Assembly: GCA_002269645.1 (NCBI GenBank) | Contig: NIVC01000268.1 | Location: forward strand, 248,001 to 312,000 | Length of the DNA stretch: 64,000 nt | Source: Macrostomum lignano | Lineage: Eukaryota | Direction: 5' to 3' | Shown: in pieces, positions 5,690 to 54,870 of the stretch | Layout: each line of letters starts with the position of its first letter | Position numbering within the stretch: position 1 is the stretch's first letter | Made by a program: the position numbers and the translations under genes | Notes under the pieces: model-generated | What the model saw: only the letters and a program-made list of their open reading frames with translations | What the model was told of the DNA's origin: nothing | The model's database searches: none

Positions 5690-6490
5690 TGGGTCATGGA
5701 TTGCTTGGGTCATGGATTGCTTGGGTCATGGATAGTTTGGTTTATGGATTGCTTGGGTCATGGATAGTTTGGTTTATGGATTGTTTGGGTCATGGATAGC
5801 TTGGATCATAGGAAGAGTCATGGATAGCTTGGATCATAGGAAGAGTCATGGATAGCTTAGATCATGGGAAGAGTCATGGATAGCTTGGATCATAGGAAGA
5901 GTCATGAATAGCTTAGATCATGGGAAGAGTCATGGATAGCTTCGGTCATAGGAAGAGTCATGGATAGCTTGGATCATGGAAAGAGTCATGGATAGCTTCG
6001 ATCATAGGAAGAGTCATGGATAGCTTCGGTCATAGGAAGAGTCATGGATAGCTTGGATCATAGGAAGAGTCATGGATAGCTTCGGTCATAGGAAGAGTCA
6101 TGGATAGCTTGGATCATAGGAAGAGTCATGGATAGCTTCGATCATAGGAAGAGTCATGGATAGCTTCGGTCATAGGAAGAGTCATGAATAGCTTAGATCA
6201 TGGGAAGAGTCATGGATAGCTTCGGTCATAGGAAGAGTCATGGATAGCTTGGATCATGGAAAGAGTCATGGATAGCTTCGATCATAGGAAGAGTCATGGA
6301 TAGCTTCGGTCATAGGAAGAGTCATGGATAGCTTGGATCATAGGAAGAGTCATGGATAGCTTCGATCATAGGAAGAGTCATGGATAGCTTCGGTCATAGG
6401 TAGAGTCATAGATAGCTTCGGTCATAGGTAGAGTCATAGATAGCTTCGGTCATAGGTAGAGTCATAGATAGCTTCGGTCATAGGTAGAGT
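5690..6490. repeat. Intronic minisatellite, 28-bp unit CATGGATAGCTTGGATCATAGGAAGAGT (16-bp precursor units at the 5' end)
   Basis: Tandem copies read directly; lies within the SHOC2-like intron 5511-6570. Confidence 0.95.
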
Positions 6491-6570
6491 CACGGATACA
6501 TTAGATATTTTGGTCATAGAAGTTCAGATTAAATGAAGTCACACAGAAATGCAATACCTGACTGCTGCAG

Positions 6571-7158
6571 GCCCTCGTACCGGAGGACATGATCAACATT
6601 CGCCAGCTAGTCGAGCTGGACCTTGGCAACAATCGTCTAACATGTATTCCGGACGAGATTGAACTGCTCCAACGATTGGAGACCCTTGTGCTCAGTCACA
6701 ATAGCATCAATAAATTGACAGAAAAGATTGGCGGCTGCGTCTGCCTGCGTAGATTAGAGTTGGAATATAACGAATTGGAAACTCTGCCAGCTGAGATCGG
6801 CCACCTGAGCGAGCTGCGGGAGATCAATCTGATCTCTAATAAGCTCGCCACCATACCGCTGGGCATCACCCTGTTGCCGTTGGTGGTGCTCCGCCTGAGC
6901 GAGAATTGCATACGCGAGGTGCCCAGAGAGATCGGTCACATGACCAATCTGAAAGAGCTCTACCTGAATGATAACAGAGATTTGGAGAACTTACCATCCA
7001 CTTTGTCGCTGTGCTCAAAGCTTGAACTGCTCAATATTGAGCACTGTCGGCTCAGTCTAATACCGACCGAGATTGTCTCATGCGGCTCCAATGTTGTCAT
7101 GCAGTTTCTCAAGCAGGTGTATAATTACGAGAAGAATTGTCACGTGCAAGAGTTGTGA
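6571..7158 (+). CDS. SHOC2: SHOC2/Sur-8-like LRR protein, last exon
   Basis: Acceptor CTGCAG|GCC at 6570/6571 is in phase with the previous exon. Consecutive LRRs end ...LYLNDNRDLENLPSTLSLCSKLELLNIEHCRLSLIPTEIVSCGSNVVMQFLK, matching the SHOC2 C-terminal cap. Stop at 7156-7158. Confidence 0.88.
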   Translation, partial: ALVPEDMINIRQLVELDLGNNRLTCIPDEIELLQRLETLVLSHNSINKLTEKIGGCVCLRRLELEYNELETLPAEIGHLSELREINLISNKLATIPLGITLLPLVVLRLSENCIREVPREIGHMTNLKELYLNDNRDLENLPSTLSLCSKLELLNIEHCRLSLIPTEIVSCGSNVVMQFLKQVYNYEKNCHVQEL

Positions 7159-9046: not shown

Positions 9047-9224
9047 GTGAGTTTTATTCACAAATTATATTAATTTTTATTTTCAACAATTACGAGCTCG
9101 TATCGCCAATTATCACCGGTTATTGTGAACTTTTTAAGAACCGCCATTCAATTATTTGATCTCTTAAAGACGTGTCATTCGGTTCATTTGATCTTTAAAA
9201 ACACCGTTTTTATGTTCCTTTGAT

Positions 9225-9765
9225 CTCTTATAATGCCGCCATTCAGTTCATTTGATCTTACATAATGCCGCCATTCAGTTCATTTGATCTTACATAATTC
9301 CGCCATTCAGTTCTTTTGATCTTACATAATGCCGCCATTCAGTTCCTTTGATCTTATATGATGCCGCCATTCATTTCATTTGATCTTACATAATGTCGCC
9401 ATTCAGTTCATTTGATCTTACATAATGCCGCCATTCAGTTCTTTTGATCTTACATAATGCCGCCATTCAGTTCATTTGATCTTACATAATTCCGCCATTC
9501 AGTTCTTTTGATCTTACATAATGCCGCCATTCAGTTCCTTTGATCTTATATGATGCCGCCATTCATTTCATTTGATCTTACATAATGTCGCCATTCAGTT
9601 CATTTGATCTTACATAATGCCGCCATTCAGTTCTTTTGATCTTACATAATGCCGCCATTCAGTTCTTTTGATCTTACATAATGCCGCCATTCAGTTCTTT
9701 TGATCTTACATAATGCCGCCATTCAGTTCGTTTGATCTTACATAATGCCGCCATTCAGTTTGAAT
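9225..9765. repeat. Intronic minisatellite, 32-bp unit CTTACATAATGCCGCCATTCAGTTCATTTGAT
   Basis: About 17 tandem copies in TJAP1-like intron 1. Confidence 0.95.
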
Positions 9766-10435: not shown

Positions 10436-10469
10436 GTAAGGCTTATGCATACCGTTTATTAGGCTTTAT

Positions 10470-11340
10470 TATCGAGGGTTTAGAGTGACTCATTATCCAG
10501 GGTTTAAAGTGACTCAAATTATCTGAGTTTAGAATGACATTATCGAGGGTTTAGAGTGACTCATTATCAAGGGTTTAGAGTGACTCATTATCAATGGTTT
10601 AGAGTGACTCATTATCAATGGTTTAGAGTGACTTATTATCGAGGGTTTATAGTGACATTATCGAGGGTTTATAGTGACATTATCGAGGGTTTAGAGTGAC
10701 ATTATCGAGGGTTTATAGTGACATTATCGAGGGTTTAGAGTGACTCATTATCAATGGTTTAGAGTGACTCATTATCAATGGTTTAGAGTGACTTATTATC
10801 AATGGTTTAGAGTGACTTATTATCGAGGGTTTATAGTGACATTATCGAGGGTTTATAGTGACATTATCGAGGGTTTAGAGTGACATTATCGAGGGTTTAG
10901 AGTGACTCATTATCGAGGGTTTAGAGTGACTCATTATCTGGGTTTGGAGTGACTCATTATCGAGGGTTTAGAGTGACTTATTATCGAGGGTTTAGAGTGA
11001 CTCATTATCGAGGGTTTAGGGTGACTCATTATCTGGGTTTGGAGTGACTCATTATCGAGGGTTTAGAGTGACTTATTATCGAGGGTTTAGGGTGACTCAT
11101 TATCTGGGTTTGGAGTGACTCATTATCGAGGGTTTAGAGTGACTTATTATCGATGGTTTGGAGTGACTCATTATCGAGGGTTTAGAGTGACTCATTATCT
11201 GGGTTTGGAGTGACTCATTATCGAGGGTTTGGAGTGACTCATTATCTGGGTTTGGAGTGACTCATTATCGAGGGTTTAGAGTGACTTATTATCGATGGTT
11301 TGGAGTGACTCATTATCCAGGTTTTAGAGTGACTCATTGA
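10470..11340. repeat. Intronic minisatellite, 24/22-bp unit GAGTGA(CT)CATTATCGAGGGTTTA
   Basis: Tandem copies in TJAP1-like intron 2. Confidence 0.95.
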
Positions 11341-13832: not shown

Positions 13833-14040
13833 TTAGATAACAAACATTGCGTAGACAATGGACACTATCCCGCCCAGCAGCATGGTGCCCAGGTACATTC
13901 TTAAGCCGAAATCGGCCAGCCAAAAATTGCCAATCAGAGCCAAAATGAACGCCGTGGCGGGTAGAAGGCGGCTCAGCGGCAATCTTGACACCTTGGACGG
14001 ACCGGCAAAGCGGCCGGTTTCGTTGAATTCGGACATCATT
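13833..14040 (-). CDS. AGPAT5: AGPAT5 exon 5 (last)
   Basis: Acceptor CCCTGCAG|A restores frame; MMSEFNETGRFAGPSKVSRLPLSRLLP...hydrophobic tail...YAMFVI*. The five exons total 1095 nt = 364 aa. Confidence 0.9.
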
Positions 14041-14076
14041 CTGCAGGGAGTGGGGCTGATTGTTAGTGTGGACTGA

Positions 14077-17000
14077 CTAGGGGATGAGACAGTGAATGGG
14101 GGCGATGAGAGGCAGGGAATGGGGGGATGAGGGAATGGTGGGATGAGGGAATGGTGGGATGAGACAGGAAATGGGGGGATGAGACAGGGAATGGTGGGAT
14201 GAGACAGGGAATGGGGGATGAGACAGGGAATGGTGGGATGAGGGAATGGTGGGATGAGGGAATGGTGGGATGAGACAGGGAATGGGGGGATGAGACAGGG
14301 AATGGTGGGATGAGACAGGGAATGGGGGATGAGACAGGGAATGGTGGGATGAGACAGGGAATGGTGGGATGAGACAGGGAATGGTGGGATGAGGGAATGG
14401 TGGGATGAGACAGGGAATGGTGGGATGAGACAGGGAATGGTGGGATGAGACAGGGAATGGTGGGATGAGGGAATGGTGGGATGAGGGAATGGTGGGATGA
14501 GACAGGGAATGGGGGATGAGACAGGGAATGGTGGGATGAGACAGGGAATGGTGGGATGAGACAGGGAATGGTGGGATGAGACAGGGAATGGTGGGATGAG
14601 ACAGGGAATGGTGGGATGAGGGAATGGTGGGATGAGACAGGGAATGTTGGGATGAGACAGGGAATGGGGGATGAGGGAATGGTGGGATGAGACAGGGAAT
14701 GGTGGGATGAGACAGGGAATGGGGGATGAGACAGGGAATGGTGGGATGAGACAGGGAATGGTGGGATGAGGGAATGGTGGGATGAGGGAATGGTGGGATG
14801 AGACAGGGAATGGTGGGATGAGACAGGGAATGGTGGGATGAGACAGGGAATGGTGGGATGAGACAGGGAATGGTGGGATGAGACAGGGAATGGTGGGATG
14901 AGACAGGGAATGGTGGGATAAGACAGGGAATGGGGGATGAGACAGGGAATGGTGGGATGAGACAGGGAATGGTGGGATGGGACAGGGAATGGTGGGATGA
15001 GACAGGGAATGGTGGGATGAGACAGGGAATGGTGGGATGAGGGAATGGTGGGATGAGACAGGGAATGGTGGGATGAGGGAATGGTGGGATGAGACAGGGA
15101 ATGGGGATGAGACAGGGAATGGGAAATGGTGGGATGAGACAGGGAATAGTGGGATGAGACAGGGAATGGGGGGATGAGGGAATGGTGGGATGAGACAGGG
15201 AATAGTGGGATGAGACAGGGAATGGTGGGATGAGACAGGGAATGGTGGGATGAGACAGGGAATGGTGGGATGAGACAGGGAATGGTGGGATGAGACAGGG
15301 AATGTTGGGATGAGACAGGGAATGGGGGATGAGGGAATGGTGGGATGAGACAGGGAATGGTGGGATGAGACAGGGAATGGGGGATGAGACAGGGAATGGT
15401 GGGATGAGACAGGGAATGGTGGGATGAGGGAATGGTGGGATGAGGGAATGGTGGGATGAGACAGGGAATGGTGGGATGAGACAGGGAATGGTGGGATGAG
15501 ACAGGGAATGGTGGGATGAGACAGGGAATGGTGGGATGAGACAGGGAATGGTGGGATGAGACAGGGAATGGTGGGATGAGACAGGGAATGGTGGGATAAG
15601 ACAGGGAATGGGGGATGAGACAGGGAATGGTGGGATGAGACAGGGAATGGTGGGATGGGACAGGGAATGGTGGGATGAGACAGGGAATGGTGGGATGAGA
15701 CAGGGAATGGTGGGATGAGGGAATGGTGGGATGAGACAGGGAATGGGGGGATGAGGGAATGGTGGGATGAGACAGGGAATAGTGGGATGAGACAGGGAAT
15801 GGGGGGATGAGGGAATGGTGGGATGAGACAGGGAATAGTGGGATGAGACAGGGAATGGTGGGATGAGACAGGGAATGGTGGGATGAGACAGGGAATGGTG
15901 GGATGAGACAGGGAATGGTGGGATGAGACAGGGAATGGTGGGATGAGACAGGGAATGGGGGGATGAGGGAATGGTGGGATGAGACAGGGAATGGTGGGAT
16001 GAGGGAATGGTGGGATGAGGGAATGGTGGGATGAGACAGGGAATGGTGGGATGAGACAGGGAATGGTGGGATGAGACAGGGAATGGTGGGATGAGGGAAT
16101 GGTGGGATGAGACAGGGAATGTTGGGATGAGACAGGGAATGGGGGGATGAGGGAATGGTGGGATGAGACAGGGAATGGTGGGATGAGACAGGGAATGGGG
16201 GGATGAGGGAATGGTGGGATGAGACAGGGAATAGTGGGATGAGACAGGGAATGGGGGGATGAGGGAATGGTGGGATGAGACAGGGAATGGTGGGATGAGG
16301 GAATGGTGGGATGAGACAGGGAATGGTGGGATGAGACAGGGAATGGTGGGATGAGACAGGGAATGGTGGGATGAGACAGGGAATGGTGGGATGAGACAGG
16401 GAATGGTGGGATGAGACAGGGAATGGTGGGATGAGACAGGGAATGGTGGGATGAGACAGGGAATGGTGGGATGAGACAGGGAATGGTGGGATGAGACACA
16501 GGGAATGGGGGATGAGAGACAGGGAATGGGGGATGAGAGACAGGGAATGGGGGGGTGAGGGAATGGTGGGATGAGACAGGGAATGGGGGATGAGGGAATG
16601 GTGGGATGAGACGGAATGGGGGATGAGGGAATGGTGGGATGAGACGGAATGGGGAGATGAGTCACAGGGAATGGGGAGATGAGTCACAGGGAATGGGGAG
16701 ATGAGACACAGGGAATGGGGAGATGAGGGAATGGGGGGATGAGGGAATGGTGGGATGAGACGGAATGGGGAGATGAGTCACAGGGAATGGGGAGATGAGT
16801 CACAGGGAATGGGGAGATGGGTCACAGGGAATGGGGAGATGAGACACAGGGAATGGGTAGATGAGTCACAGGGAATGGGGAGATGAGTCACAGGGAATGG
16901 GGAGATGAGTCACAGGGAATGGGGAGATGAGACACAGGGAATGGGGAGATGAGACACAGGGAATGGGGAGATGAGACACAGGGAATGGGGAGATGAGACA

Positions 17001-17645
17001 CAGGGAATGGGGAGATGAGACACAGGGAATGGGGAGATGAGACACAGGGAATGGGGAGATGAGACACGGGGAATGGGGAGATGAGTCACAGGGAATGGGG
17101 AGATGGTACACACGGAATGGGGAGATGAGACAGGGAATGGGGAGATGAGACAGGGAATGGGGAGATGAGTCACAGGGAATGGGGAGATGAGACACGGGGA
17201 ATGGGGAGATGAGTCACAGGGAATGGGGAGATGGTACACACGGAATGGGGAGATGAGACAGGGAATGGGGAGATGAGACAGGGAATGGGGAGATGAGTCA
17301 CAGGGAATGGGGAGATGAGACAGGGAATGGGGAGATGAGACAGGGAATGGGGAGATGAGACACAGGGAATGGGGAGATGAGTCACAGGGAATGGGGAGAT
17401 GGTACAGGGAATGGGGAGATGAGACAGGGAATGGGGAGATGAGACACAGGGAATGGGGAGATGAGACACAGGGAATGGGGAGATGAGACACAGGGAATGG
17501 GGAGATGAGTCACAGGGAATGGGCAGATGGTACACACGGAATGGGGAGATGAGACAGGGAATGGGGAGATGAGACACAGGGAATGGGGAGATGAGACACA
17601 GGGAATGGGGAGATGAGTCACAGGGAATGGGGAGATGACACAGGA
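14077..17645. repeat. 3.5-kb G-rich intronic minisatellite: 20/16-bp units GATGAG(ACAG)GGAATGGTGG, then about 22-bp units GAGATGAGACACAGGGAATGGG
   Basis: Fills almost all of AGPAT5 intron 4 (14041-17662); source of the spurious 860-890 aa ORFs. Confidence 0.97.
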
Positions 17646-17662
17646 AATGAAATGAAACCAAC

Positions 17663-18114
17663 CTGTCTTTCTCAGCGAAGACTCCATGCAGCCAGCTGGC
17701 CACCTCCTCCTGATTTCGCCTGGGCACCAGATCCATAGGCAGTCTACGCAGATGAATATGCAGCGTGCGACGCCGTTTAAACCAGGAGAACAATTGTGGC
17801 ACGTTTTTACCACCGGTGAAGCCTTCATAAGCGATGGTGATGTCATACACTGCGTCAAAATAGTTAGCCAGAGTGTTGAGAGTCAGGTAGGTGCCTTTTA
17901 CTCGCGGAGTCAGGTGGTAGCGCAGCTGCTGCAGCCCGTGGCTGGTGGCGAACTCCTGAGACTTTTTAATCACCGCCGGTTTATCATAGTTAATCCGGGT
18001 GCCCTCGGGGAAAATGATCACCCAGGAATTGGTGTTGTTGGCTTCGAGCGATTTCAGCGAGCGGACAGCTTGATCGGCTTTGAATTCGCTGCGATTGACG
18101 AATATGCAGCCGTG
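17663..18114 (-). CDS. AGPAT5: AGPAT5 exon 4
   Basis: HGCIFVNR...IFPEGTR...HLTPRVKG...AVYDITIAYEG...LHGVFAEKDR (motifs II-IV); donor AG|GTTGGT, phase 2. Confidence 0.95.
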
Positions 18115-22393: not shown

Positions 22394-22715
22394 GGGGTTT
22401 TAGATTATAGTGGTTATAGAGAGCGTCGGACTCACGACTTGAAAAGGTCGGGGGTTCGATCCCCGATCCACTCGAAACAATATTTGTGTCCTTGAGCAAG
22501 ACACTTAACTCTCTGCATTGCTTCAGTTCACCCAGAGCTGTAAAATGGGTGCCAGCATTAGCTGGGGTAATTGAGGGTGTGTGTGGTGACCCTCCAGTCC
22601 CAGCCGTACGCATGCAGCCTTCAGATGCGCCGCGCAATAGCTGAGGCTGAGAGCTGTCGCGGTTGCACATCTGCCCATTATGACAGGTGTAATTGTGACT
22701 GTGACTGTTATTATT
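22394..22715 (+). mobile_element. tRNA-derived SINE with CORE-like central domain
   Basis: A-box-like TAGTGGTTATAGAG; B box GGTTCGATCCC (22453-22463); GTGTCCTTGAGCAAGACACTTAACTCTCTG...CTGTAAAATGGG (22486-22551) resembles the MIR/CORE consensus GTGACCTTGGGCAAGTCACTTAACCTCTCTG...CTGTAAAATGGG; tail (GTGACT)2 GTTATTATT. Confidence 0.75.
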
Positions 22716-26702: not shown

Positions 26703-27082
26703 ATTATATTATATTTTTATATAAGATCTATGATCGCGAGTAAATGAAAGGATTGATTTATCATCATCTTTGTTGCATTGAATTTGAATGTTCAATAAGC
26801 AAAATGATATTTTTTTAAAATTTATCACAATTATGGTATACAGCTTGTAACTCAACCGTAGACTCATTTAAACCTGCCAACAAATGAAGACAATATTGTC
26901 TGTTGAATTTTAGCGTCAATTCTGCGTTAACACACGACTTGTACATATCACACACTTCACTTTGCACATCAGCTGCGCGACGATGTAATTCTTTCATGGC
27001 TAGAAAAACTCAAAGTTGTATTTTTCAAAGATAAAAACAATATTTGAACAATTTCAGCTTACAAATCGGTTTGGAAACAAAG

Positions 27083-28537
27083 ATGACAACATCGAGCTCT
27101 CTCACCATTCCTGCGGTGGGCCATCCATTCACCCTTGGTGCACTGTACAACAGCAGGACCAGCCAAATCATCCCCGGAGTCAAGTTATTCACCGCTGAGC
27201 AGATGCAGACTATGCTGACCGAAACTAAGAACATCAGCATGGAGACCGATATCGTCACAGAAACGTCAGCGAACAGCAAAAACCTGAGCACAAAAGTGAC
27301 CGGAAATCTGTCGCTGTCAATTCTATCGGGACTGGTGTCCGCTAGCGGCTCCGGGAACTACCAGACTACCTTAAAAGAGAAGAAAGAGACGGAGAGCGCC
27401 ATATATCGACTGCAAGTTCAAGGAAAGTATTGGGAACTTGTTGTCCCACCGGATTTGAAGCTGAAGAGCTCAGCGAGCTACAAAGATGCCACTCACGTAG
27501 TAATGGGAATTCAGTACGGCGGAGCCGCTCTGTTCTTTTTCGAGCGGGACAAAGAAGACTCCGCAACGAGCGACAAAACCGGAGGCGGTCTAAAAGCTCA
27601 GATTGGCAAGTTTGCATCGTTGGTCAGCATCTCTGGAGCTGCCTCGCTTGACATGACGTCGGAGGAAACGAAAGTCGTGCAGAAGATCCGAGTTGCCTAC
27701 AAGGGAGACTTCCACCTGGCCAGCCCACCGACCAACTTCATTGAAGCCATGAAGTGCATTCAAACAATCCAAGCTGCTGAAGCTAGATCGCCACTGACGG
27801 TCAACCTGCTTCCTCTGTCACTGCTGGTTGAAGACACTCCACCAGCGCCCCTGCCACTACCGCCCACGTGCATCTGCAAAACTGTTCGCTGCTACGAAGT
27901 GCTGAAAGAAGCTCTGACTACTCTGGAGGAAATTATTTACAAGCTGAGACCGACAGCGTGGACTCACGTGGTGAAGAAGCTGGAAGCGGAAGTTCGGGAG
28001 CTCGAATCATTCAAGTCTTCCCTTGATGATGCTGTGAGGGAAGCTGTTCTAGATCACACGACTGAGCCTTCCAATCAAGCGAGCAAAATCGGGTTGAAAA
28101 CGGACCTTTTCGACGCTGGAAAAAAGTACGCTCACCTACAGGAATGGGCCACCGCAGTCGCCGATACCGGTGACGTTCTGGTTGTGATTTCCAATAAGTT
28201 CCGAGAGGCTGGCGCCCAGATAATTAAAAGCCAGGCCCAGAGAGCCGAATTCATCATGAGGAGCATGACAGAACCAAACCAAAAGATGTACTGCCTGTCT
28301 TGCCCGATGAAATTGTTTGAACTGCAAAAGTTCGAGCACCAAGTTGAATTGAAACTCTGGAACAACAAACAGCTCGAGAAGAAATTTTACAAAAAGTTAG
28401 TAGAATATTGCCCCACGCCAGGGAATCAAAAGCTCAAATTGGTGCAACCTCTAGTAGCTGTTGAGCAATCCGAGGTTCCTGATTCTGACGCATCCGGAGT
28501 GCAGGTGACCTTCCGGAACCTCTCATCGGATTCCTGA
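27083..28537 (+). CDS. Stonustoxin/verrucotoxin-like MACPF/CDC pore-forming-domain protein A (484 aa, intronless CDS, no signal peptide)
   Basis: LTIPAVGHPFTLGALYNSRTSQIIPG, LSLSILSGLVSASGSGNY, ATHVVMGIQYGGAALF, YKGDFHLASPPTNFIEAMK and PLTVNLLPL align with SNTX hallmarks (MPALGRPFTLGMLYD, LGVSFLGGLVEVGGSAKY, ATHVVTSILYGANAFF, FHGDFLLESLPTTFEDAVK, PMKVWLAPL). Confidence 0.88.
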   Translation: MTTSSSLTIPAVGHPFTLGALYNSRTSQIIPGVKLFTAEQMQTMLTETKNISMETDIVTETSANSKNLSTKVTGNLSLSILSGLVSASGSGNYQTTLKEKKETESAIYRLQVQGKYWELVVPPDLKLKSSASYKDATHVVMGIQYGGAALFFFERDKEDSATSDKTGGGLKAQIGKFASLVSISGAASLDMTSEETKVVQKIRVAYKGDFHLASPPTNFIEAMKCIQTIQAAEARSPLTVNLLPLSLLVEDTPPAPLPLPPTCICKTVRCYEVLKEALTTLEEIIYKLRPTAWTHVVKKLEAEVRELESFKSSLDDAVREAVLDHTTEPSNQASKIGLKTDLFDAGKKYAHLQEWATAVADTGDVLVVISNKFREAGAQIIKSQAQRAEFIMRSMTEPNQKMYCLSCPMKLFELQKFEHQVELKLWNNKQLEKKFYKKLVEYCPTPGNQKLKLVQPLVAVEQSEVPDSDASGVQVTFRNLSSDS

Positions 28538-29559
28538 ATTAGATTGACGGCACCCTTGTTTGTGAGTATCGACAATATTCGATTGTGAAAACGTGAACTG
28601 GCGAAATTTTGCTATTTCTAATTGACGAAACTGTAGAGTCGAGACGTAGATTTTTTGCCTTGGAATTTTCACATTCACAAGTTTTTATATCAAGTGTTTA
28701 CAGCTTGTTAAATTTTCAACTAGCTAAAGCTACTTGACTTGCCGTGGATTTTTTACAACATTTATTTTTCGCGACAGCAAGTTGAGCAGAATAAGCCGCG
28801 GTTAGTACACATATTCTACTACTGCTAATATACATTTACGCTAATAACCCAGAACATTATTGAGTTGTTAAATCAATAAAGTTTATTTTATTCGCACCTA
28901 TAAATAAGTGATTTTTATTTTTATTTTCACCATAGATTTTTTAGTACCTGTGCTTTTTACTAATTATTCTGATCCTTCTTGCTCAACTTACTCGCGTGTT
29001 TCTTATTCAGTAAATTGCATGCGTTCTACGAGCGTAATTAAATTTTAACTTTAAAAAAGTAAAAAAACAAAAAAACATGAACTTTCTTTGTTTAATAAAC
29101 AGTATACTCCAATTTATATTAACTATACGTGTGTGATGTGGGTTTAGTTTTTTAAGCAGGCATATTTTTTCACTGTCACTAACCTTTAAGCATGTAATCC
29201 AGATTCGTAGCAATTAAATATTTGCTCTCAGTAAGTATATTAATAAAAATACCGATTGTTGAACAAAACTTTGTTTTCTTCTTTTATATTTTTGATTGGC
29301 TAGTGCGCAAAGAATCATATTAGAAGAATAGCTACGTAGCATCTCCTTTGTATAAAACATATTTAGTTCCCTTAACCCAAGACACAACATCGACCCTTCC
29401 TGGAGAAATCGTTAGTGGGCATGTTAAAGCGGTAGAACTTTAAAAAGGATTTATTCCTATTACTTTATATAATTACATTTTCAAAAGATGCAAACCCTTT
29501 TCTCGCACTAACAATCATTTGCCAAACATTTCAGCACAATCCTGACGAACGACTTCAAC

Positions 29560-31584
29560 ATGCAGACTCAACCGGAGTGCATCCCGTCTCTGGGCCGGGC
29601 CTTTCAGCTCGGACAGATGTACGACATCCGACAGCACCGGATCATTGCACAGTCGGCCTGGCCCACAGATCGAATTCGGCGAATGACGACTCGGCTGGAT
29701 GATGCGCCCAGCGTGAGGTTTTCTCTGGACTACGAGTACAGCTCGAAGCGCCGAGCGGAACAGCTGGGGCTGAACGCCCAGCTGAGGTTTTGCATTGAGT
29801 TCAAATTGGCCTGGTGGAAACTCGGCGAGAAGTCAATGACAGGATCAGCAAAATACGTCACCGAGGCAAGCTCCAACGAGACCAGTGGAAGCGTCACTTT
29901 GCAGTACGACGTGAAGGGTCCGTTTGAAGAGCTTCAGTGCTGCAACGAGCCTGTAGACAATGAGAAGAAGTTACTAAGCACTGGTGCAACACACGTTGTG
30001 ACAGGAATCCGGTACGGAGGCAAGGCGTTCATTGTCTGCAAAGGCTGGTCCAATGCGTCCAGCTTCTTCGAGCGAGCAACATCTGACTGTCATGAACTGG
30101 TAGATTGGAAGGTGGAACAGTGGATCAGAGATGCTGGGCAGTCTGCCAGATCATTCGCTAAATTTGACTTGCCGAACCGCTCAAGTTCTGGCAGTTATCA
30201 GATCGAATGTCACACCGACTTCAAGCAGCCAAGGAAGACCATGAGAGAGCCACCAGATGTTTTAGAGTATTTTAAATCGTTAGATTCAAGGGATGCAAAC
30301 AAAGCAATGGAAATTCATCTCACTCCATTGCGCTACTTTTGCCCGTCGGTTCCAGCTTCAGTCCCAATGGCAAAAACGCAGCATCTGGAAGATGCCTGCC
30401 AGTACCTTCAAGCGTTGAAGGCCGGCTTTGAACAGTCCGAGGATCTTTTGGACAAGATCAGCCGGGAGGCAGAGTTGAACATTTCAATCGGAGAGACACT
30501 GCATGGCTACAAGAGAGAGCTGGACACTCATGTGAGCGAGTACACACAGCGGATGCAACAAAGTTTTGTGAATCATCGCACTTCGGACGAGTTTGCTGAA
30601 GCTCATCACGCCGGCAGTTTAGACAGCGTCTTCACCTACAGCAGCATGGACACCTCTTTGAACATGTTTGGTCGCCAAACTACCGACCTCTGCGATTTAA
30701 GTGCAAAGCTTCGACAGGGTATTGACGCTACAAGCGCGGAAGAACTTGAGACAAAAGCAGAAAGATTGGCAAAGGAAATCGAAGACCTGTTCAGCATACA
30801 CGACTCGAACAAGCAGCTCCAAGAGCAAATGTGCCCAGGACAGAGCCACTTTAGAATTAAGCGCACCAGAATCGAAGAAAGAAGTCGGGATGATCGGTCC
30901 TGCATCACTTGGTGCATCAGGTGTCGAAGTACGTGTCATGCAAACTGTGGCGTGCCGAATAATGAGGATAAAGCAAGGTGTGGTGCTATGAAACCTAATG
31001 GATACTGTAAAGAGTGCGACTGCCACTGGAGGCTTCACCGGAACACCAGCACCGAACAGAGAGAGGTTGAACACTACGAATTTGTTCCCATTGACAGAGT
31101 GAGCAAGAAGTATGGAGAAAATCCGAACCAGCGCGGTGCTGTGAGGCGTCTCAAGTATCACCTTGGAATGGACGCGAAGATGGCTTTGCAGAAAACGGCC
31201 TACGAACTCGTGAAAGCGCACAGGTGCTTGAAAGGCCTGCACCAGGACGTCAACTTGGATCAGTTCATTAGAGACAAGCTTCGGTCCAAGCGGCTCGATC
31301 CAGAAGATTCCTCCAAGTTGATTCAGCTGACCAAAGCTATCGATGCACGAGTTGAGGATAGAACCGATTACGCTAGGTTTGAATGGCAGTCACGAAGGCA
31401 GGAACCTCCGACAACGCCGCCGACATTTGGTGCAGTAGGAGTAGTCGCCGGTGATGTACATGGACGCCTCTCTGCAGGTTTTCCTGGTGTCGGTGCATTC
31501 GGTTCTGCTTGGCACGAAAGGCCCACCAGGCGACAAAATCGGGATTCAAATCCTCAGTCTGATTCGGAGTGCGTTATTAGTTGA
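29560..31584 (+). CDS. Stonustoxin-like MACPF/CDC protein B with Cys/His-rich module and C-terminal CaaX (674 aa, intronless CDS)
   Basis: IPSLGRAFQLGQMYD, TGSAKY, ATHVVTGIRYGGKAFIV and MEIHLTPL are SNTX hallmarks; helical region; CITWCIRCRSTCHANC...C...CKECDCHWRLHRN; ends ECVIS*. Confidence 0.85.
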   Translation: MQTQPECIPSLGRAFQLGQMYDIRQHRIIAQSAWPTDRIRRMTTRLDDAPSVRFSLDYEYSSKRRAEQLGLNAQLRFCIEFKLAWWKLGEKSMTGSAKYVTEASSNETSGSVTLQYDVKGPFEELQCCNEPVDNEKKLLSTGATHVVTGIRYGGKAFIVCKGWSNASSFFERATSDCHELVDWKVEQWIRDAGQSARSFAKFDLPNRSSSGSYQIECHTDFKQPRKTMREPPDVLEYFKSLDSRDANKAMEIHLTPLRYFCPSVPASVPMAKTQHLEDACQYLQALKAGFEQSEDLLDKISREAELNISIGETLHGYKRELDTHVSEYTQRMQQSFVNHRTSDEFAEAHHAGSLDSVFTYSSMDTSLNMFGRQTTDLCDLSAKLRQGIDATSAEELETKAERLAKEIEDLFSIHDSNKQLQEQMCPGQSHFRIKRTRIEERSRDDRSCITWCIRCRSTCHANCGVPNNEDKARCGAMKPNGYCKECDCHWRLHRNTSTEQREVEHYEFVPIDRVSKKYGENPNQRGAVRRLKYHLGMDAKMALQKTAYELVKAHRCLKGLHQDVNLDQFIRDKLRSKRLDPEDSSKLIQLTKAIDARVEDRTDYARFEWQSRRQEPPTTPPTFGAVGVVAGDVHGRLSAGFPGVGAFGSAWHERPTRRQNRDSNPQSDSECVIS

Positions 31585-34089
31585 ATTTTAAATACATTTA
31601 TTTCTGTACATGTACGAGATCCTGTCCTGTACATGTCGTATAATTTCCGTTAAAATTACGAGTATATTAAGTTGTAAATGAAGCACAAGGCAACAAAACT
31701 TGGCGTAACTTCCGAGTCCTAGCTAAGTGCATGCGAACTATGGCTAGAATCGAACAAAACAAGCTCAACTTGTAGTAACTTCACGTAGTACCTTGCTGTT
31801 TTACACAATTAATCTTAAATTAACTTTAGAAACCTGAGAGTTAATTTTGCACTAATTTTAATTCATACAAGTGCATATTGCTGAAAGTAGCTTGTTTGCA
31901 TCTTACGCTATTTTTTATTTCAGTTACGATACATTGAATAATCACAGTTTGGTAACCGACCCTTCCGGAATTTGGATTTCTAAAGATGGTCATTTTACTA
32001 GCAAATGTTTATGAGATCAACGATAGATAAAATTATATTTGATTCCACGCTTATTTACCATTCGACCCGATTTGTACAAAATAAGAACTCTGCCGTGTAT
32101 ATTTTGATGCGGTTTTTTAAGCGTACTTATTCAGTTACATATAATACATTATCCCGATTATGAGTGTTTCGCATCCGCATGATCGACACATGATTTAGCA
32201 GTTTACCTGGCTTATTAACTTGCGACCAGATTGGACCATTTCTTGCAGAGTCGCTTTGCTAAGAAAACCGGAAAAGCAGAGCTCGAGGAGTTGAGCACGT
32301 GCTGAAGAGCTGCATGCAAGCGCGACCCAACATTCTGATTGGTGCAGACTGGGCACTTTTTGTCGAGACAGAATAAGCACACGGTCACTGTACTATTTAC
32401 TACAAACGAACGAAAAAAGACAAGATTTATTACACCCTTCATTTAGACGGATCCATCACAATCACATCGGGTTGGTAGATCTTTAAAGCCATCGCCAGGA
32501 TGAAAACAGCCTCCGACTCCTGTCGCTCATAGCAGAAGACAGTCCATAAGAGCACAACCGCAGGAATCTCTATCATCGACGCTAATTCACGCCTTCCTAT
32601 AGCCGAAGCTGCATGGTCTGTCGCTCTCTTGAATGCAGCAGACATCGTAGCGTGCCGCGATTTCGACAAACCGATTAACCAACCGCTGAGAACACTTCGC
32701 CGAAGTGATCTTATATATTGCCAAAACTGCAAGTGATTTTGTCCGCGGAAAGTTATGCCTCGGCCTATTCCCCATGTCCCATAGGACCCCAGCAGCATGA
32801 GCCATAGAGCATAGACTAATTATATCGGAAAACTGCATTCAATTTTGTCAAAACTGCAAACCTAGTTTGCTTGCCTGAGAAAAATTTTTTGTTGTAATAT
32901 AAATTCAGTACATGGATGAACTGAACTGTAACACTGAGCAGTGAACATGCACAACATACAGTGTATCACAGCTCTCCGTTGTACATGCACCATGCAGCGT
33001 CGAGACGGCGGCTGCCGCCTTTCCCAGTGACTGGTGCAGCCAGACACTGGGATTGACATTTTTCGAAACAGCCAATTAGCACCGATCTAGCACATGTGTA
33101 CGAACGGATCAACCAACAAGTGCGACACCTTCAACGGCGTCGCCGGTGCCATCATCAGCCCCAACAGCTCCAGCTACTGACTACTGTCTCCTACAGTAGT
33201 CCGGCCGGAGCGGTAACCTCGCTAAGACAATTCGTAATTCAAATTCAAAGCTTGCTGATGAACTCGATCCACTTGTTGGCAGTAATTGGTTTCCATTAAA
33301 ATTTTAGCTTTTTGCAACCAGCGGATGTAATTTCTTCCACATCCTTCAGAAAAGATGCGGCGTTTCTCTGCACTTCAGACTCATCAGCTCCTCCTCATCC
33401 AGCAATAAAACCAATGACCATCTTGAGAGTTGCTAATTGCCCCTTAAAGTCACTTAAACCTAAAGGCCACAGAATATATTCTGTGCAGCTTACTGAAAAA
33501 TTCAATTGCTTCTCCATGGTGCATCGCTTGAGTCAAGGAAAAAAGCAAAACAGTCATTTATGTTAGGAAGAGTCACTTCGAATAGAATTTTGTTCGACAA
33601 ACTGTAGCTTTTCAAATTTTATTTTTGCTGCCTTTAAGCCCATGCATTGTGCAAAGTACAGAGAGCGCAGTCTCTACCATATTGTTTGTCAGCTGTTAGC
33701 GACCAAAGTCAGGTGACTGCCTCATTTGGTGCACCGTGCTCTGACAACTAGAGGTAAGAGGCTCGCCCAGCTTATTGGTGCCATATGCCTCGTATAAAAT
33801 TGGCTTTTTACTCTGTTCAAGCACTCGGGGAAGACGCGTCAGACATTGATTCCTGCAATCCACTGTAAGCATAACGAGTGATCGCTATATCACCCACTGT
33901 GCATGGTGTACTTGCAACATCCCAGCATGACTGGCCCAGATGTAATTCGATTGTCACTGTGCGGACGAACGCGTGTACTCTGCAGCTCTTCGACGGGCAG
34001 AGCTAGGGCGAACTCGAATATTGGTGAGCTCGATAGGCTAGAGTAACTGGCAGGTGTGAGGTACGGCGCCAGCACATCACGTGAAAGGG

Positions 34090-34680
34090 GGTACATGGGG
34101 GCACTATGGGGGAGAGCCCATTGGTGAGGGCACAGGGGCATTTGGGAGAGAGGTCAGAGAGCGCAGCGGTGAAGGAGGGCACGGGGGTATGGGGGAGGTC
34201 ATATGGGCAATGGGGAAAGTACAGGGATATGGGGATAGCTGATCACATAGATTTTGGGGGGGGGGAGGTCACATGGGTATTGGGGGAGGTCGGTTGGATG
34301 TGGAGGAGGGGGTTAAATGGGGGGTCACATGGATATGGTGTGGGGGCCGCATGGATATGGACGAGGGGTATTGGGGTCACATGGGTGAAGGAGGGTTATG
34401 GGGGAGGGGTCATATGGGTATGGAGGGGGGTTATGGGGGAGGGGTCATATGGGTATGGAGGGGGGTTATGGGGGAGGGGTCATATGGAAGAGGGGTCATA
34501 TGGAGGAGGGGTCATATGGGTATGGAGGGGGGTTATGGGGGAGTCATATGGGTATGGAGGAGGGTTATGGGGGAGGGGTCATATTGGTATGGGGAGGCCT
34601 ATGGGAGGAGGGGTCCCATTGGTATGGAGGGGGGTTATGGGGGGAGGGGTCACATGGATATGGAGGAGGACACAGCTAGA
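34090..34680. repeat. Degenerate G-rich minisatellite (about 33-35-bp unit GGTTATGGGGGAGGGGTCATATGGGTATGGAGG)
   Basis: Read directly; open in all three + frames with different low-complexity products. Confidence 0.85.
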
Positions 34681-36039: not shown

Positions 36040-37040
36040 AATATGGTGAACGGGAGCCCAAATGATGAAATGGTGAATCGGTGCCTAATTAATTATGAAA
36101 TGGTAAATTGACGCCTAACTGATGATAAATTGTGAACCGGCGCCTGACTGATGATGAAATGGTGAATCGGCGCCTAATTAATGATAAAATGGTGAATCGG
36201 CGCCTAATTAATGATAAAATGGTGAATCGGCGCTTAATTAATGATAAAATGGTGAATCGGCGCCTAATTAATGATAAAATGGTGAATCGGGGCCTAATTA
36301 ATGATAAAATGGTGAATCGGGGCCTAATTAATGATAAAATGGTGAATCGGGGCCTAATTAATGATAAAATGGTGAATCTGGGCCTAATTAATGATAAAAT
36401 GGTGAATCGGGGCCTAATTAATGATAAAATGGTGAATCGGGGCCTAATTAATGATGAAATGGTGAATCGGGGCTTAATTAATGATAAAATGGTGAATCGG
36501 CGCCTAATTAATGATAAAATGGTGAATCGGCGCCTAATTAATGATAAAATGGTGAATCGGCGCTTAATTAATGATAAAATGGTGAATCGGCGCCTAATTA
36601 ATGATAAAATGGTGAATCGGGGCCTAATTAATGATAAAATGGTGAATCGGGGCCTAATTAATGATAAAATGGTGAATCGGGGCCTAATTAATGATAAAAT
36701 GGTGAATCTGGGCCTAATTAATGATAAAATGGTGAATCGGGGCCTAATTAATGATAAAATGGTGAATCGGGGCCTAATTAATGATGAAATGGTGAATCGG
36801 GGCTTAATTAATGATAAAATGGTGAATCGGGGCCTAATTATTCATAAAATGGTGAATCGGGGCCTAATTAATGATAAAATGGTGAATCGGGGCCTAATTA
36901 ATGATAAAATGGTGAATCGGGGCTTAATTAATGATAAAATGGTGAATCGGGGCCTAATTATTCATAAAATGGTGAATCGGGGCTTAATTAATTATAAAAT
37001 AGTGAATCTGGGCCTAAGCAATGATGAAATAGTGAATTAG
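36040..37040. repeat. Intronic minisatellite, 30-bp unit ATGATAAAATGGTGAATCGGGGCCTAATTA
   Basis: About 30 copies inside PLGRKT intron 2. Confidence 0.97.
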
Positions 37041-37220
37041 CGCTTAAGTAATGATAATGATAAAATGAATCAACTGAGTCATCATTATTAGGCCCATCTA
37101 AAATTCTATCTCCAACAGAATGCCTTTTTACCATGTCTTGTAGGCCCATGCAGCACGCATACAATGACATGTACGCTATGCATAAACAATAACTCCAGGA
37201 TATTTTTACAAGCAACTCAC

Positions 37221-38339: not shown

Positions 38340-38960
38340 GGGAGCACAAGACTTGCCTGCTGAGATTTGCCTGCAGTGCAATTTGCTTGTGAGTGAATTG
38401 CCCACGAGCAAATTGCCCACAAGCAAATTGCCCGCCAAGATTTGCCTGCAATGCTTTTTTCCTGCAGCACATTTGGCAGCTAGATTCTGTCTACATTTCC
38501 TCCCCCCAAAAAATGTTTTGATGGTGTAAATCTCTTTATTCAGACTTACTAAGCATTGGGAAGGCAATGCAGACAAAACCTGCCATGTGGCCAAATGCGC
38601 TGCAGGAAAAAAGCATTGCGGGCAAATCTCGGTGGGCAATTCGCTTGCAGGAAATTCACTTGCGGGCAAATTGCACTGCAGGCAAATCTCGGCTGGCAAT
38701 TCGCTTGCAGGAAATTCACTTGCGGGCAAATTGCACTGCAGGCAAATCTCGGCTGGCAATTCGCTTGCAGGAAATTCACTTGCGGGCAAATTGCACTGCA
38801 GGCAAATCTCGGCTGGCAATTCGCTTGCAGGAAATTCACTTGCGGGCAAATTGCACTGTGGGCAAATCTTGGCTGGCAATTTTCAGCAGGCAAATCTCCA
38901 TGGGCAATTTGCTGTCAGGCAAAATGCACTACAGGCAAATCTTGGCAGGCAAATCTTGAT
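38340..38960. repeat. Foldback-like inverted structure with 60-bp tandem unit
   Basis: Four near-identical 60-mers at 38641-38880; 38340-38480 is an inverted, diverged version of about 38588-38720. Confidence 0.75.
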
Positions 38961-46774: not shown

Positions 46775-49215
46775 CTAAAGCCAATTGACGCTATGGAGAT
46801 TGACCCACCCACAATCCGTACCCAACGCCAACTCCGCCCTCCTGGAGACCTTCATCCAGTCTAGGAACCTCGTCGGAGTGAATGGCTCTCTACGGCAGCG
46901 GCTCGCGAAGCTTCTAACTTTCTTCGGCCCAAACGGCAGAACGACAAGGCTGGACTGGATCCTCTGCCCTTTTCCGTTGCGTTCTAGAGTGCGCAAAGTG
47001 ATCAACATCCGCCCCAGATGCGTCGCTTCCGACCACAGCTTGGTTGCCTGCGAACTGAACCTCTCGTGGACGAGATTCAGACGCCCCCCGCCGAAGCCTC
47101 TCTGGGCAGACCTGAGGAACCCAGAGACTCGCACTGACTTCCTGACCGAGCTCTCCAACGCGAGCCCCGCCATCACCGAGACAGCTGAGGCCTTTGCGAA
47201 TGCCGTCGGGTCGGCAGCGTCAGTTCTGCCTAGACAAATAGGACACCAGCCAAGGGCACTTTGGGACTGCGACGCCGTGATCGCCACTACCAGACGCTCT
47301 GCACAGAGCGCCGCTGCGCGTCACGGCGAGGACAGCGACCAGGCTAGACTCGCCAGAGACAACCTGCAGGCGACGTACGCCCAACGCACTGAATTATTTA
47401 TTGAGGAGGCGGTCCAGGAGATCCAGGCCGCCACCGACAACTGCCGGCACACCGCTGCCTGGCGAGCAATCAACCGCCTCACAGGACGAAGACCCCGTCC
47501 GACCACAGTCGTTGGCGCTGAGTCCATAGAGCAAAGAAAGAGCCTGCTTGTCGACCACTACCGGCAAGTTTTAAATGCCCCCTCCCCGACGTCTCCCCTT
47601 CTCCCGGCCGCCGGCTTCACCCCAGCTCAGCATGGCGACTTCTACACCGGCCCGATCACCGCCGCGGAAGCTACCAAGGCGCTGAAGAGCATGCGCGCTG
47701 ACGCTGCCTCTGGAGTCGACCGAGTGCCTCCCAGGGTTCTGAAGTTGCCAGAGCTTACAGACAGCATTACTAGCATCCTGAACAAGTACTGCTGTCTCGG
47801 CGGCGACCCAGCTGCTATGGCCGCCCCCCTCTGGCGTACTTCAAGAATTGTCTCCATCCCGAAGAAGGACGCCTCCACGAGCCTTGACAACCAACGCGGT
47901 ATCGCACTGGAGTGCACGCTGCCAAAGCTGCTGAACGCAGTGTTGTGCAATCGGCTCCTCCCTGTCCTGAACTCGCTGCTACTCGAGCTTCAAAGTGGCT
48001 TCAGGCCAGGAAGATCCACTACGGAGCAGATTGTGGCCATTCGGTGCATTGTCGAAACCTGCAAGACTCGTCTTCGAGCCGTGTCTATCGTCTTCGTTGA
48101 CTTCCGGAAGGCCTTCGACTCTGTCAGCAGGACGGCCTTAGCCTGGCTCCTGGCTCAGTACGGCGTCCCCGACACCCTGGTGACGGCAGTTATGGACCTG
48201 TGCCACAACTCCAAGGCGTTTGTCGACTCCAGCGATGGCCCTACGGACGAGTTTGATACCACTTCCGGGGTGCTGCAAGGGGACACGCTATCTCCCCTGC
48301 TTTTCATTCTGGCTGTTGACTACATCTTGCGCCGCTGCCTTTGAGACGACGACAGCTTTGTCCTCGCGCCTCAGCGTAGCTCCCGCCACACTGCCGTGAC
48401 GCTCCCAGCCCTCGCCTATGCTGATGACATCGCGCTGCTGTGCCGAGACCCTGTAGCAGCCCAGCACGCTCTTACTCGACTCTCCGAGGAAGGCGCCCGG
48501 ATCGGCTTGCAGATTAACACAGGCAAGACGGAGGTGCTGCACGTGGGTGCTGACAATGCCCCACCGCTGACCCTGCCCAACGGCGAGGCCATTTCAACGT
48601 GCAGCGACTTCCGCTACCTAGGCACCCTCGTAATGAGCCCAGAGGCGATCATCGCGGACAGGAGGACCCAGGCCTGGCGCGCCATGCACCACCTCAGGCC
48701 GATCTTCACCTCCGGAGGGCGGGACGACCTGAAGATCCACCTGTTCCGCGCCGCTGTAGAGCCGATCCTTCTCCACGGCATGGAGGCTGTCCCGATGACA
48801 ACCACGCGAGAACGGGCCCTGGACGCGATGCACCGCAACCTGCTGCGCAAGGCGCTGGGCGTGCGCTACCCGACCGTCCTCTCGACGGCCCAGCTGATGG
48901 CGAGATCGAAATCACCGTCCCTCAGCGCCACCCTCCGCCGGCGCCGCCAGGCCCTGCTGGGACACTGCCTGCGGCGGTTCGCCCGCGGCGACGACAACCC
49001 GCTTGGACTGGCCATTCTGCATCCGCCGACCGAACGGTTCCGCCGCGGCCAAGGGCGGACCCAGACGCTCCGGGAGACTCTTGTCGCCGACCTGGAGGCA
49101 ATTGGACTGACCCCCCAGACTGCTGCGACCTGCCCTGCCCCTCTTTTTTGCAATCGTGTGCGCTTGTACCCCCCGACCCTAGCGTCGTTGTAATGTAATG
49201 TAATGTAATGTAATG
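46775..49215 (+). mobile_element. 5'-truncated RTE-like LINE (APE C-terminus + RT), nearly intact, one internal stop, (TGTAA)n tail
   Basis: TFFGPNGRTTRLDWIL...SDH (endonuclease), NQRGIAL, QSGFRPGRST, FVDFRKAFDSV, GVLQGDTLSP, LAYADD, RRRRQALLGHCLRR. TGA at 48342-48344 lies between two same-frame ORFs. Tail at 49189-49215. Confidence 0.92.
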
Positions 49216-54459: not shown

Positions 54460-54870
54460 ACAGTTAGTGGACACACAAAAATCTGAGGATGACACACTAA
54501 TCTTGAACGGACATTAATCTTGAGCTGGACACACTAATCATGAGGTTGATACACTATTCCTTGACGTGGACACACTAATCCTGAGGTGGACACACTAATC
54601 CTGAGGTGGACACACTAATCATGAGGTTGACACGCTAGTCCTGAGGTGGACACACTAATCCTGAGGTTGACACGCTAATCCTGAGGTGGACACTCTAACC
54701 CTGAGGTTGACACGCTAATCCTGAGGTGGACATGCTAATACGAGGTGGACACACTGACCCTCTGGTGGACACGCTAATTCTGAGCTGGACAGGCTAATAT
54801 ACTTAAGTGGACACACTAATGCTGAGATAAATACGCTCGTACGTCACGACACTAATCCTAAAGTGGACAA
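54460..54870. repeat. 20-bp-unit minisatellite CTGAGGTGGACACACTAATC
   Basis: Read directly. Confidence 0.9.

Follow-up and report, generated by a model that had tools for sequence, protein, structure and literature searches.

An open reading frame (ORF) of 674 codons, here called gene B, lies on the forward strand of contig NIVC01000268.1 within the stretch analyzed in this study (positions 248,001 to 312,000; 64,000 nucleotides, hereafter the window) and encodes a stonustoxin (SNTX)-like protein which ends in Cys671-Val-Ile-Ser674, a CaaX box of the farnesyltransferase (FTase) type. From sequence comparisons, we propose with a probability of about 0.55 that this box is a functional farnesylation and membrane signal; the protein is probably tethered to the cytoplasmic face of a membrane. 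The proposal builds on a coding sequence (CDS) under purifying selection that ends naturally at the box, on known farnesylated tetrapeptides both in gene B and in its Macrostomum lignano copies, and on a position-specific excess of cysteine at the end of the C-terminal module to which the box belongs. The features of gene B are as follows (coordinates of the window; AF2, AlphaFold2; pLDDT, predicted local distance difference test).

29502..29559, forward strand: upstream conserved leader with an acceptor-like site ...tttcag (AG at 29533-29534) and an in-frame TAA at 29509
29560..31584, forward strand: gene B CDS, 674 codons plus stop, no interruption
29560..30354, forward strand: SNTX-type MACPF/CDC-like domain, residues 1-265 (match to 4wvm_B; limits as for SNTX in PMC8704401)
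29986..30021, forward strand: MACPF-signature-like motif ATHVVTGIRYGG, residues 143-154 (aligned with the motif of 4wvm_B)
30355..30897, forward strand: helical region, residues 266-446, with a FAT-like start followed by a coiled-coil lead-in to the module (SNTX alignment and AF2)
30898..31038, forward strand: Cys/His zinc knot, residues 447-493 (invariant and near-invariant columns; AF2 pLDDT 92-98)
31039..31395, forward strand: helical hairpin of the module, residues 494-612 (HMMER matches and AF2)
31396..31569, forward strand: Gly/Pro/Ala-rich disordered linker, residues 613-670 (pLDDT <50), including the hypervariable codons 628-657
31570..31581, forward strand: CaaX box Cys671-Val-Ile-Ser674 (direct reading; CTIS in the M. 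lignano copy)
31582..31584, forward strand: TGA stop (similarity to M. lignano ends at 31591)

Coding sequence and C-terminus of gene B

Direct reading of positions 31570-31584 gives TGC GTT ATT AGT TGA, and the translated protein terminates in ...HERPTRRQNRDSNPQSDSECVIS. The preliminary description of this DNA had named this CVIS end, and it indeed closes the 674-codon ORF. Among 5.8 billion proteins, the nearest relative of gene B is M. lignano PAA47042.1 (BOX15_Mlig004669g4), which is 87-88% identical and ends in CTIS, as do all M. lignano copies. An identical copy of the gene B protein was not present among these sequences, which assigns the window to Macrostomum, with a congener or a diverged paralogous locus as its source. 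In the three M. lignano loci used for comparison (L001-L003), the gene model consists of a single exon terminating at the equivalent stop. Nei-Gojobori estimates for gene B were made against L001 and gave a synonymous divergence (dS) of 0.18, with ratios of non-synonymous to synonymous divergence (dN/dS) of 0.40 for the whole gene, 0.23 for its MACPF-like domain and 0.24 for its helical region. Purifying selection on gene B thus indicates a functional coding gene with 31582-31584 as its natural stop, and the FTase-type CaaX box that had been claimed is a canonical one at the true end of a conserved CDS. A pseudogene or non-coding ORF was considered and excluded, since two lineages retain all 674 codons, with a dN/dS of 0.23-0.45 where the protein is folded into domains. 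The DNA similarity of the gene B block begins 58 nt before the ATG and ends 7 nt past the stop. In the leader, the tttcag with its AG at 29533-29534 is a putative splice acceptor, and the partial M. lignano CDS opens with TILTNDFNM immediately 3′ of this AG.

With respect to FTase specificity, the V-I-S of the box combines small or aliphatic residues at a1 and a2 (a2 being I, V or L) with an X residue from the set S, M, A, Q and C. A heuristic hydropathy scan, which is not a dedicated predictor, found neither a signal peptide nor a transmembrane (TM) segment in gene B (maximum 19-residue Kyte-Doolittle value 0.93, no N-terminal hydrophobic core), placing the C-terminus in the cytosol by predicted topology. 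The tail is rich in Gly, Pro, Ser and Ala, and its last ~60 residues, with a pLDDT <50 in AF2, are predicted to form a flexible linker before the box. A disordered linker in a protein without a secretory signal is the context that FTase needs for access to a box. The last 30 residues contain four K/R, four D/E and a single Cys (net charge 0), and neither a polybasic stretch nor a second palmitoylatable Cys, as in a Ras-type two-signal anchor, was found among them. The linker with basic residues that had been described before the box (RPTRRQNR) is therefore present but not polybasic, and its basic residues (RPTRR) are not conserved in the M. lignano copy. Without such a second signal, anchoring of gene B would be weak or dependent on the avidity of an oligomer.

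Both Macrostomum tetrapeptides occur in well-studied proteins. The CVIS of human ZAP-L is S-farnesylated, is required for antiviral activity and endomembrane localization, and relocalizes ZAP-S when appended to it (PMC8568172). Rabbit GBP1 likewise ends in CVIS (PMC10859415), and in human GBP1 the box that is farnesylated reads CTIS (bioRxiv 10.1101/2023.03.28.534355).

The C-terminal module and its CaaX ends

The box closes a C-terminal module which starts with a lead-in helix, continues with a Cys/His knot and a helical hairpin and runs out into a variable tail. An exhaustive HMMER search with residues 430-674 as query yielded 300 proteins at E<=1e-3, many of these homologues being encoded on metagenome contigs; a word-indexed homologue search yielded, apart from the M. 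lignano cluster, a single fish protein for full-length gene B, and no more than 7 proteins for the module profile. The HMMER matches reach positions ~130-180 of the 245-residue query. In the knot, C452, C455, C474, C483, C486, C488, W490 and H493 are invariant and C459, H460 and C463 near-invariant, and gene B carries the pattern C-x2-C-x3-C-H-x2-C...C...C-x2-C-x-C-x-W-x2-H at all of these columns. The module always stands at the extreme C-terminus, the distance from knot to end being mostly 175-225 aa (228 aa from residue 447 in gene B). An AF2 model of the module, computed from a 31-sequence alignment, has a pLDDT of 92-98 in the knot, 64-93 in the hairpin and <50 in the disordered tail, and its helices span positions 82-136 and 141-173. 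In a Pfam scan of gene B and its relatives no family corresponded to the module, and a Foldseek comparison of the module model with the PDB gave nothing significant, only weak rubredoxin-like knuckles (E of at least 0.64).

In 36 of the 68 relatives scanned, an AIG1/septin/MMR_HSR1-type P-loop GTPase lies N-terminal to the module. About 12 relatives, from fish, soft coral, crab, ostracod and fungus, are ordered SNTX-like MACPF/helical/thioredoxin, fn3, GTPase and module. Gene B has no GTPase match in Pfam, and in an alignment with these SNTX-GTPase-module relatives it has no residues in the columns of thioredoxin, fn3 and GTPase. Its residues ~393-446 correspond to the helix that precedes the knot in the GTPase proteins. 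Judged by this alignment, gene B is a short relative of an old SNTX-GTPase-module architecture, without the thioredoxin, fn3 and GTPase parts. The full SNTX-like, GTPase and module architecture, otherwise found in animals, also occurs in one fungal protein, KAL2148627.1 of Thermothelomyces myriococcoides (1288 aa), which could reflect an ancient origin, horizontal transfer or contamination.

Cysteine occupies position -4 in 15 of 126 complete representatives of the module, compared with 0.9% at the other 19 terminal positions (13-fold; binomial p=1e-12). The a2 residue is aliphatic in 12 of these 15 ends, which include CIIV, CFIF, CNIL, CSLS, CTIA, CVIF, CYIL, CLIF, CSIF and others. The CaaX-ended proteins consist of an AIG1 GTPase and the module and come from toad, clam, mussel and marine eukaryote or protist-like contigs; in both cases checked, the box is followed by a genuine stop codon. 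On a crude neighbor-joining tree, CaaX ends are scattered over the module family with at least 13 state changes. From the position-specific excess it follows that the CaaX end recurs in the module. Taken together with the CTIS of the nearest relative and with the known farnesylation of both CVIS and CTIS, this excess argues that the box of gene B is more than chance.

About a quarter of the family members without CaaX have another kind of end. A short aromatic-basic ending such as WWPFGK, FFGFKK, LWTKFRK or FDFFQK was found on 34 of the 126 representatives, against 8 of 126 in a control window. Such an ending may be an alternative membrane-binding tail, and the two kinds of ending together suggest that the end of the module is possibly a general membrane-contact site.

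The preliminary description had also drawn a parallel to GBP-type immunity. The CVIS of gene B is shared with rabbit GBP1 and the CTIS of the M. lignano copies with human GBP1, and the parallel gains some circumstantial weight because the module normally follows AIG1/GIMAP-like GTPases; lacking a GTPase domain, however, gene B is not GBP-like in mechanism. In the literature searched, no paper joined stonustoxin with prenylation or with AIG1, matches combining GIMAP and CaaX were incidental, and neither a prenyl-tailed MACPF-like protein nor a CaaX enrichment of the zinc-knot module was found.

Conservation of the tail and weighing of the box

The linker is the fastest-evolving part of gene B (dN/dS ~1). 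Within it, about 90 nt corresponding to codons 628-657 (window 31441-31530) are almost unalignable with M. lignano in a gene that is otherwise 91% identical, with proportions of synonymous (pS) and non-synonymous (pN) differences of 0.57 and 0.61 and with in-frame indels. Compared with the average of the gene, synonymous divergence in these codons is ~6-fold, more than can be explained by relaxed constraint alone; their Gly/Ala-rich composition is kept in both lineages. An origin of the hypervariable stretch 31440-31530 as frameshifted or inverted M. lignano sequence was rejected, as only a core of ~30 nt aligns and neither a reverse-strand match nor another copy was found. By analogy, the stretch resembles the hypervariable region which precedes the CaaX box of small GTPases. 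In the last 17 codons, RQNRDSNPQSD[S/P][E/D]C[V/T]IS (window/M. lignano), identity is back to ~90%, and these codons are much better conserved than the preceding ~30. The exchange of V for T at a1 takes two nucleotide changes and leaves the Cys, the a2 Ile, the X Ser and the stop unchanged. The a1 position is the most permissive one of the CaaX box in FTase specificity.

The rival explanation that survives best, although we consider it unlikely, is a fortuitous and non-functional CaaX-like end, in which a disordered tail drifts and its last four residues spell a box by chance in a recently diverged pair. A tail that contains the fastest-evolving and partly unalignable stretch of the gene would be expected under this explanation, which is further favored by the excess of non-synonymous over synonymous changes in the last 17 codons (four against one), by the availability of two independent lineages only and by SNTX-GTPase-module relatives without CaaX. 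It does not account for the 13-fold excess of Cys at -4 in the module family (p=1e-12), mostly with an aliphatic a2, nor would drift be expected to leave known farnesylated boxes in both Macrostomum variants, to place the two-nucleotide change on the permissive a1 while sparing Cys, a2 and X, or to keep the last 17 codons far better conserved than the ~30 before them.

Several further points weigh against a farnesylated, membrane-bound MACPF-like protein. The last 17 codons (51 nt) carry five substitutions, one synonymous and four non-synonymous, at a dS of 0.18, so that the retention of Cys, Ile, Ser and stop is not statistically significant in this one comparison. A dN/dS test for selection on the CaaX itself has no power with two lineages and was set aside as evidence. 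As to the check for conservation of the CaaX box that had been suggested earlier, all M. lignano copies end in CTIS and Cys at -4 is strongly enriched in the family, but two lineages at dS 0.18 give a comparison without power. None of the ~12 SNTX, GTPase and module proteins found elsewhere ends in CaaX, and the combination is thus so far confined to Macrostomum. The expressed C-terminus of gene B is predicted from DNA and its lipid is putative, and a lone farnesyl without a second signal would give only weak membrane binding. Finally, the full-length AF2 model is poor (pLDDT 51.6), and the top Foldseek matches of this model are all MACPF/CDC pores, yet non-significant (E of at least 2.5e-3, TM-score <0.15), so that a MACPF fold and pore competence of gene B are not established by modelling.

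Homology of the N-terminal half to stonustoxin

Residues 8-348 of gene B match stonustoxin beta (4wvm_B, E=3.8e-12), which bears out the SNTX-like label given earlier, and the alpha subunit 4wvm_A is matched as well (E=6.5e-7). The Pfam family MACPF_SNTX (PF24674) gives E=2e-4 and 21 bits on gene B, under the cut-off of 27 bits, and a fish SNTX-like protein from the 5.8-billion-sequence database matches with E=1.6e-5. The motif ATHVVTGIRYGG aligns with ATHVVIGILYGA of 4wvm_B and conforms to the MACPF-signature-like pattern in the region G-[TS]-H-x7-G-G; T144 and V147 of gene B are nearly invariant among SNTX-like relatives. With no Pfam match to Thioredoxin_11, PRY or SPRY, gene B does not have the four-domain architecture MACPF-FAT-thioredoxin-PRYSPRY. 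The full-length AF2 model places helices at 273-341 and 373-422 with low confidence. The homology of its first ~350 residues places gene B, as a divergent member, in the SNTX branch of the MACPF/CDC proteins.

Proposed mechanism

In the mechanism which we propose, gene B would be a cytosolic protein joining an SNTX-type MACPF/CDC-like domain and a helical region to a module with a two-zinc Cys/His knot. Cytosolic FTase would farnesylate Cys671, -VIS would be cut off, and Cys671 would be carboxymethylated at the endoplasmic reticulum by Rce1- and ICMT-type enzymes. With the lone lipid, the protein would then bind weakly and reversibly to endomembranes on their cytoplasmic face, and MACPF-like oligomerization, possibly with the product of the neighboring paralogue gene A as in the SNTX alpha/beta pairing, would provide the avidity for strong binding. 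The anchoring may be regulated as in GBP1, with the lipid being exposed only on activation. In SNTX, the fourth domain, PRYSPRY, is credited with the initial binding to the cell surface, and the alpha/beta heterodimer forms the pre-pore (PMC8704401). The module and the lipid tail of gene B could take over the targeting role of the missing PRYSPRY.

We infer lipidation, membrane location, oligomerization, pore formation and a role in cell-autonomous defense or cell death for gene B; that it acts in immunity or forms pores from the cytosolic face appears doubtful to us. Equally speculative is a wider scheme in which the A/B pair would be a cytosolic, farnesyl-guided, perforin-like executioner, the lipid tail of gene B gathering SNTX-type MACPF oligomers on the cytoplasmic face of organelles, pathogen vacuoles or the plasma membrane for perforation from inside. 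In this scheme, AIG1-like GTPase and perforin-like immune effectors would form a large and so far unrecognized family throughout the eukaryotes, and all would be delivered to membranes by the module, whether it ends in a CaaX or in an aromatic-basic tail.

Farnesylation need not imply a constitutive anchor. The farnesyl of GBP1 is buried until activation, after which micellar oligomers form (bioRxiv 10.1101/2023.03.28.534355), and the membrane binding of ZAP-L is weak, with ZAP-S carrying an appended CVIS being lost on fractionation (PMC8568172). Along these lines, gene B could be farnesylated with the lipid serving mainly as a protein-protein or autoinhibitory element, either buried in a pocket or engaged in micelle-like self-assembly, cf. 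resting GBP1. A lone farnesyl with neither a polybasic nor a palmitoyl second signal fits this idea, and the hairpin beside the tail might offer a hydrophobic groove. We nevertheless judge it improbable, as no pocket could be identified and an end that follows ~60 disordered residues is more likely to be freely exposed; moreover, this explanation overlaps with membrane tethering through the farnesylated box and does not exclude it.

To our knowledge, all characterized MACPF/CDC proteins approach the membrane they target from the extracellular side or from a lumen, by secretion, a TM anchor or receptor- or lipid-binding domains. If the tethering of gene B by its farnesylated box is correct, prenyl delivery to the cytosolic leaflet would be a new way of aiming the MACPF fold, and it would form a conceptual link from this fold to executioners that act inside-out and to immune effectors that carry a prenyl group, GBP1 and ZAP-L among them. 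The module itself lies outside Pfam, is undescribed, and is common to hundreds of AIG1/GIMAP-like GTPases and SNTX-GTPase fusions from fungi to fish. The enrichment of CaaX at its end provides a membrane-targeting hypothesis for many candidate immune GTPases annotated as "uncharacterized". Macrostomum lignano is a laboratory model for which RNA interference and transgenesis are available.

Gene A and the genomic context of the pair

Upstream of gene B, the window contains a second SNTX-like gene.

27080..28537, forward strand: gene A, upstream tandem paralogue of gene B, encoding a 485-aa SNTX-like protein

Gene A has neither the zinc knot and C-terminal module nor a CaaX box and terminates in ...LSSDS*. 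It shares 22% identity with gene B across the MACPF and helical region (E=1e-12) and matches fish stonustoxin-beta-like proteins with E=2.4e-19. By analogy, the A-B tandem recalls the SNTX alpha/beta heterodimer. Stonustoxin has no classical signal peptide and is nevertheless found in venom. That A and B work as a true stonustoxin analogue, a heterodimeric cytolysin secreted or stored in glands for predation or defense, unconventionally released and with a CaaX that is irrelevant or serves packaging only, would agree with such venom subunits and with the tandem of SNTX-like paralogues, but is very unlikely given that gene B lacks the PRYSPRY surface-binding domain, that a Cys/His zinc knot would be typical of reducing intracellular compartments and that the module is otherwise attached to cytosolic-type P-loop GTPases. 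The preliminary description had taken gene B for something other than a secreted venom, which is plausible.

As part of the A-B unit, gene A is 91.7% conserved relative to the M. lignano loci. A blastn comparison of the window with L001-L003 gave 91% identity in two main blocks, 27077-28599 and 29502-31591, and outside these blocks short and weaker matches upstream and in the A-B spacer (69-84% identity). Between positions 18000 and 44000, only the A-B pair, part of the spacer and an element of ~200 nt (22468-22672) are common to the window and the three loci, so that the pair stands in a different genomic context; in the M. lignano loci, the ~200-nt element sits between A and B. The window does not contain the Ig/fn3/kinase gene that lies downstream of the pair in the M. 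lignano loci, and the flanking DNA is not shared. The orthologue of gene A forms a single frame in L002 (7451-8969), shifts frame after ~336 codons in L001 (7455-8965) and shifts frame twice in L003 (1450-2965), suggesting indels in the assembly or decay of the copies. In the protein collection, no M. lignano protein resembling A was found.

Other features of the window

A giant minisatellite occupies positions 14081-17649, with the 20-nt unit GGGATGAGACAGGGAATGGT repeated ~182 times and a GC skew of up to 0.83, and gives rise to long minus-strand ORFs (13833-16687) that are spurious. Many other minisatellites, with repeat units of 20-60 nt in 4.5-37 copies, are located at 5789-6498, 9214-9760, 10468-11338, 34373-34669, 36061-37057, 38613-38881 and 54467-54826. 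The array at 36061-37057, with a 30-nt unit, accounts for a 302-aa "ORF" (36132-37040), whose weak TFIIA_gamma_N match is probably spurious. A polyprotein of a BEL/Pao-type long terminal repeat retrotransposon extends over 58410-63521, comprising a 1415-aa ORF (DUF1759, RVT_1, Peptidase_A17) followed by a 286-aa ORF (Integrase_H2C2). In a GC-richer block, a reverse-transcriptase domain spread over two adjoining ORFs (46785-48344 and 48396-49193) represents a degraded retroelement. In addition, a 189-aa leucine-rich-repeat ORF at 6589-7158 (LRR_8, E=1.7e-18) is probably an exon of a larger leucine-rich-repeat gene.

Comparison with known systems

Stonustoxin (PDB 4WVM) and the fish SNTX-like proteins share with gene B a MACPF/CDC-like domain from residue ~8 followed by a helical domain. 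The motif ATHVV.GI.YG is kept in gene B, and both systems comprise two divergent tandem paralogues. Like SNTX, gene B has no N-terminal signal peptide. Unlike SNTX, gene B has no thioredoxin-like and PRYSPRY domains and carries the zinc-knot/helical module and a CaaX end instead.

The arrangement of gene B, with an SNTX-like domain at the N-terminus and the module at the C-terminus, recurs in XP_028328301.1 (Gouania willdenowi), XP_028407935.1 (Dendronephthya gigantea), KAK8378025.1 (Scylla paramamosain) and the Thermothelomyces protein KAL2148627.1. These SNTX, (fn3), AIG1/septin-like GTPase and module proteins are larger than gene B (~900-1300 aa), contain thioredoxin, fn3 and a P-loop GTPase in between, have no CaaX end and are all annotated as "uncharacterized". 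A module homologous to that of gene B, whose variable tail is about as long and likewise leads to a Cys at -4, is present in XP_053571494.1 (Bombina, CNIL), XP_053388220.1 (Mercenaria, CSLS), KAK3588166.1 (Potamilus, CQLC) and proteins from marine contigs (CLIF, CFIF, CVIF, CTIA). In contrast to gene B, these AIG1/GIMAP-like proteins have a GTPase as N-terminal effector in place of a MACPF-like domain, and many of their boxes end in F or L. A CaaX box ending in F or L favors geranylgeranylation.

GBP1 carries a polybasic patch near its CaaX box, which the tail of gene B does not have. The tetrapeptides of human GBP1 (CTIS) and rabbit GBP1 (CVIS) are identical to the Macrostomum boxes, and a helical region precedes the tail in these proteins, too. 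The GBP1 proteins depend on farnesyl for membrane coating in cell-autonomous immunity (PMC10859415; bioRxiv 10.1101/2023.03.28.534355), whereas gene B has neither sequence homology to them nor a dynamin-like GTPase. Human ZAP-L/PARP13.1 has the same box CVIS as gene B on unrelated domains (RNA-binding zinc-finger and PARP). Gene B would act in the manner of a CaaX-tailed effector such as GBP1 or ZAP-L. Its membership in a GBP- or ZAP-type family was rejected, as Pfam gave no GTPase or GBP match and there is no PARP domain; the likeness to GBP is limited to the CaaX box. According to PMC7593815, MPEG1/perforin-2 is a MACPF-family protein on intracellular membranes. MPEG1 is TM-anchored, faces the lumen and belongs to the secretory pathway, whereas gene B would be anchored by a lipid on the cytosolic face.

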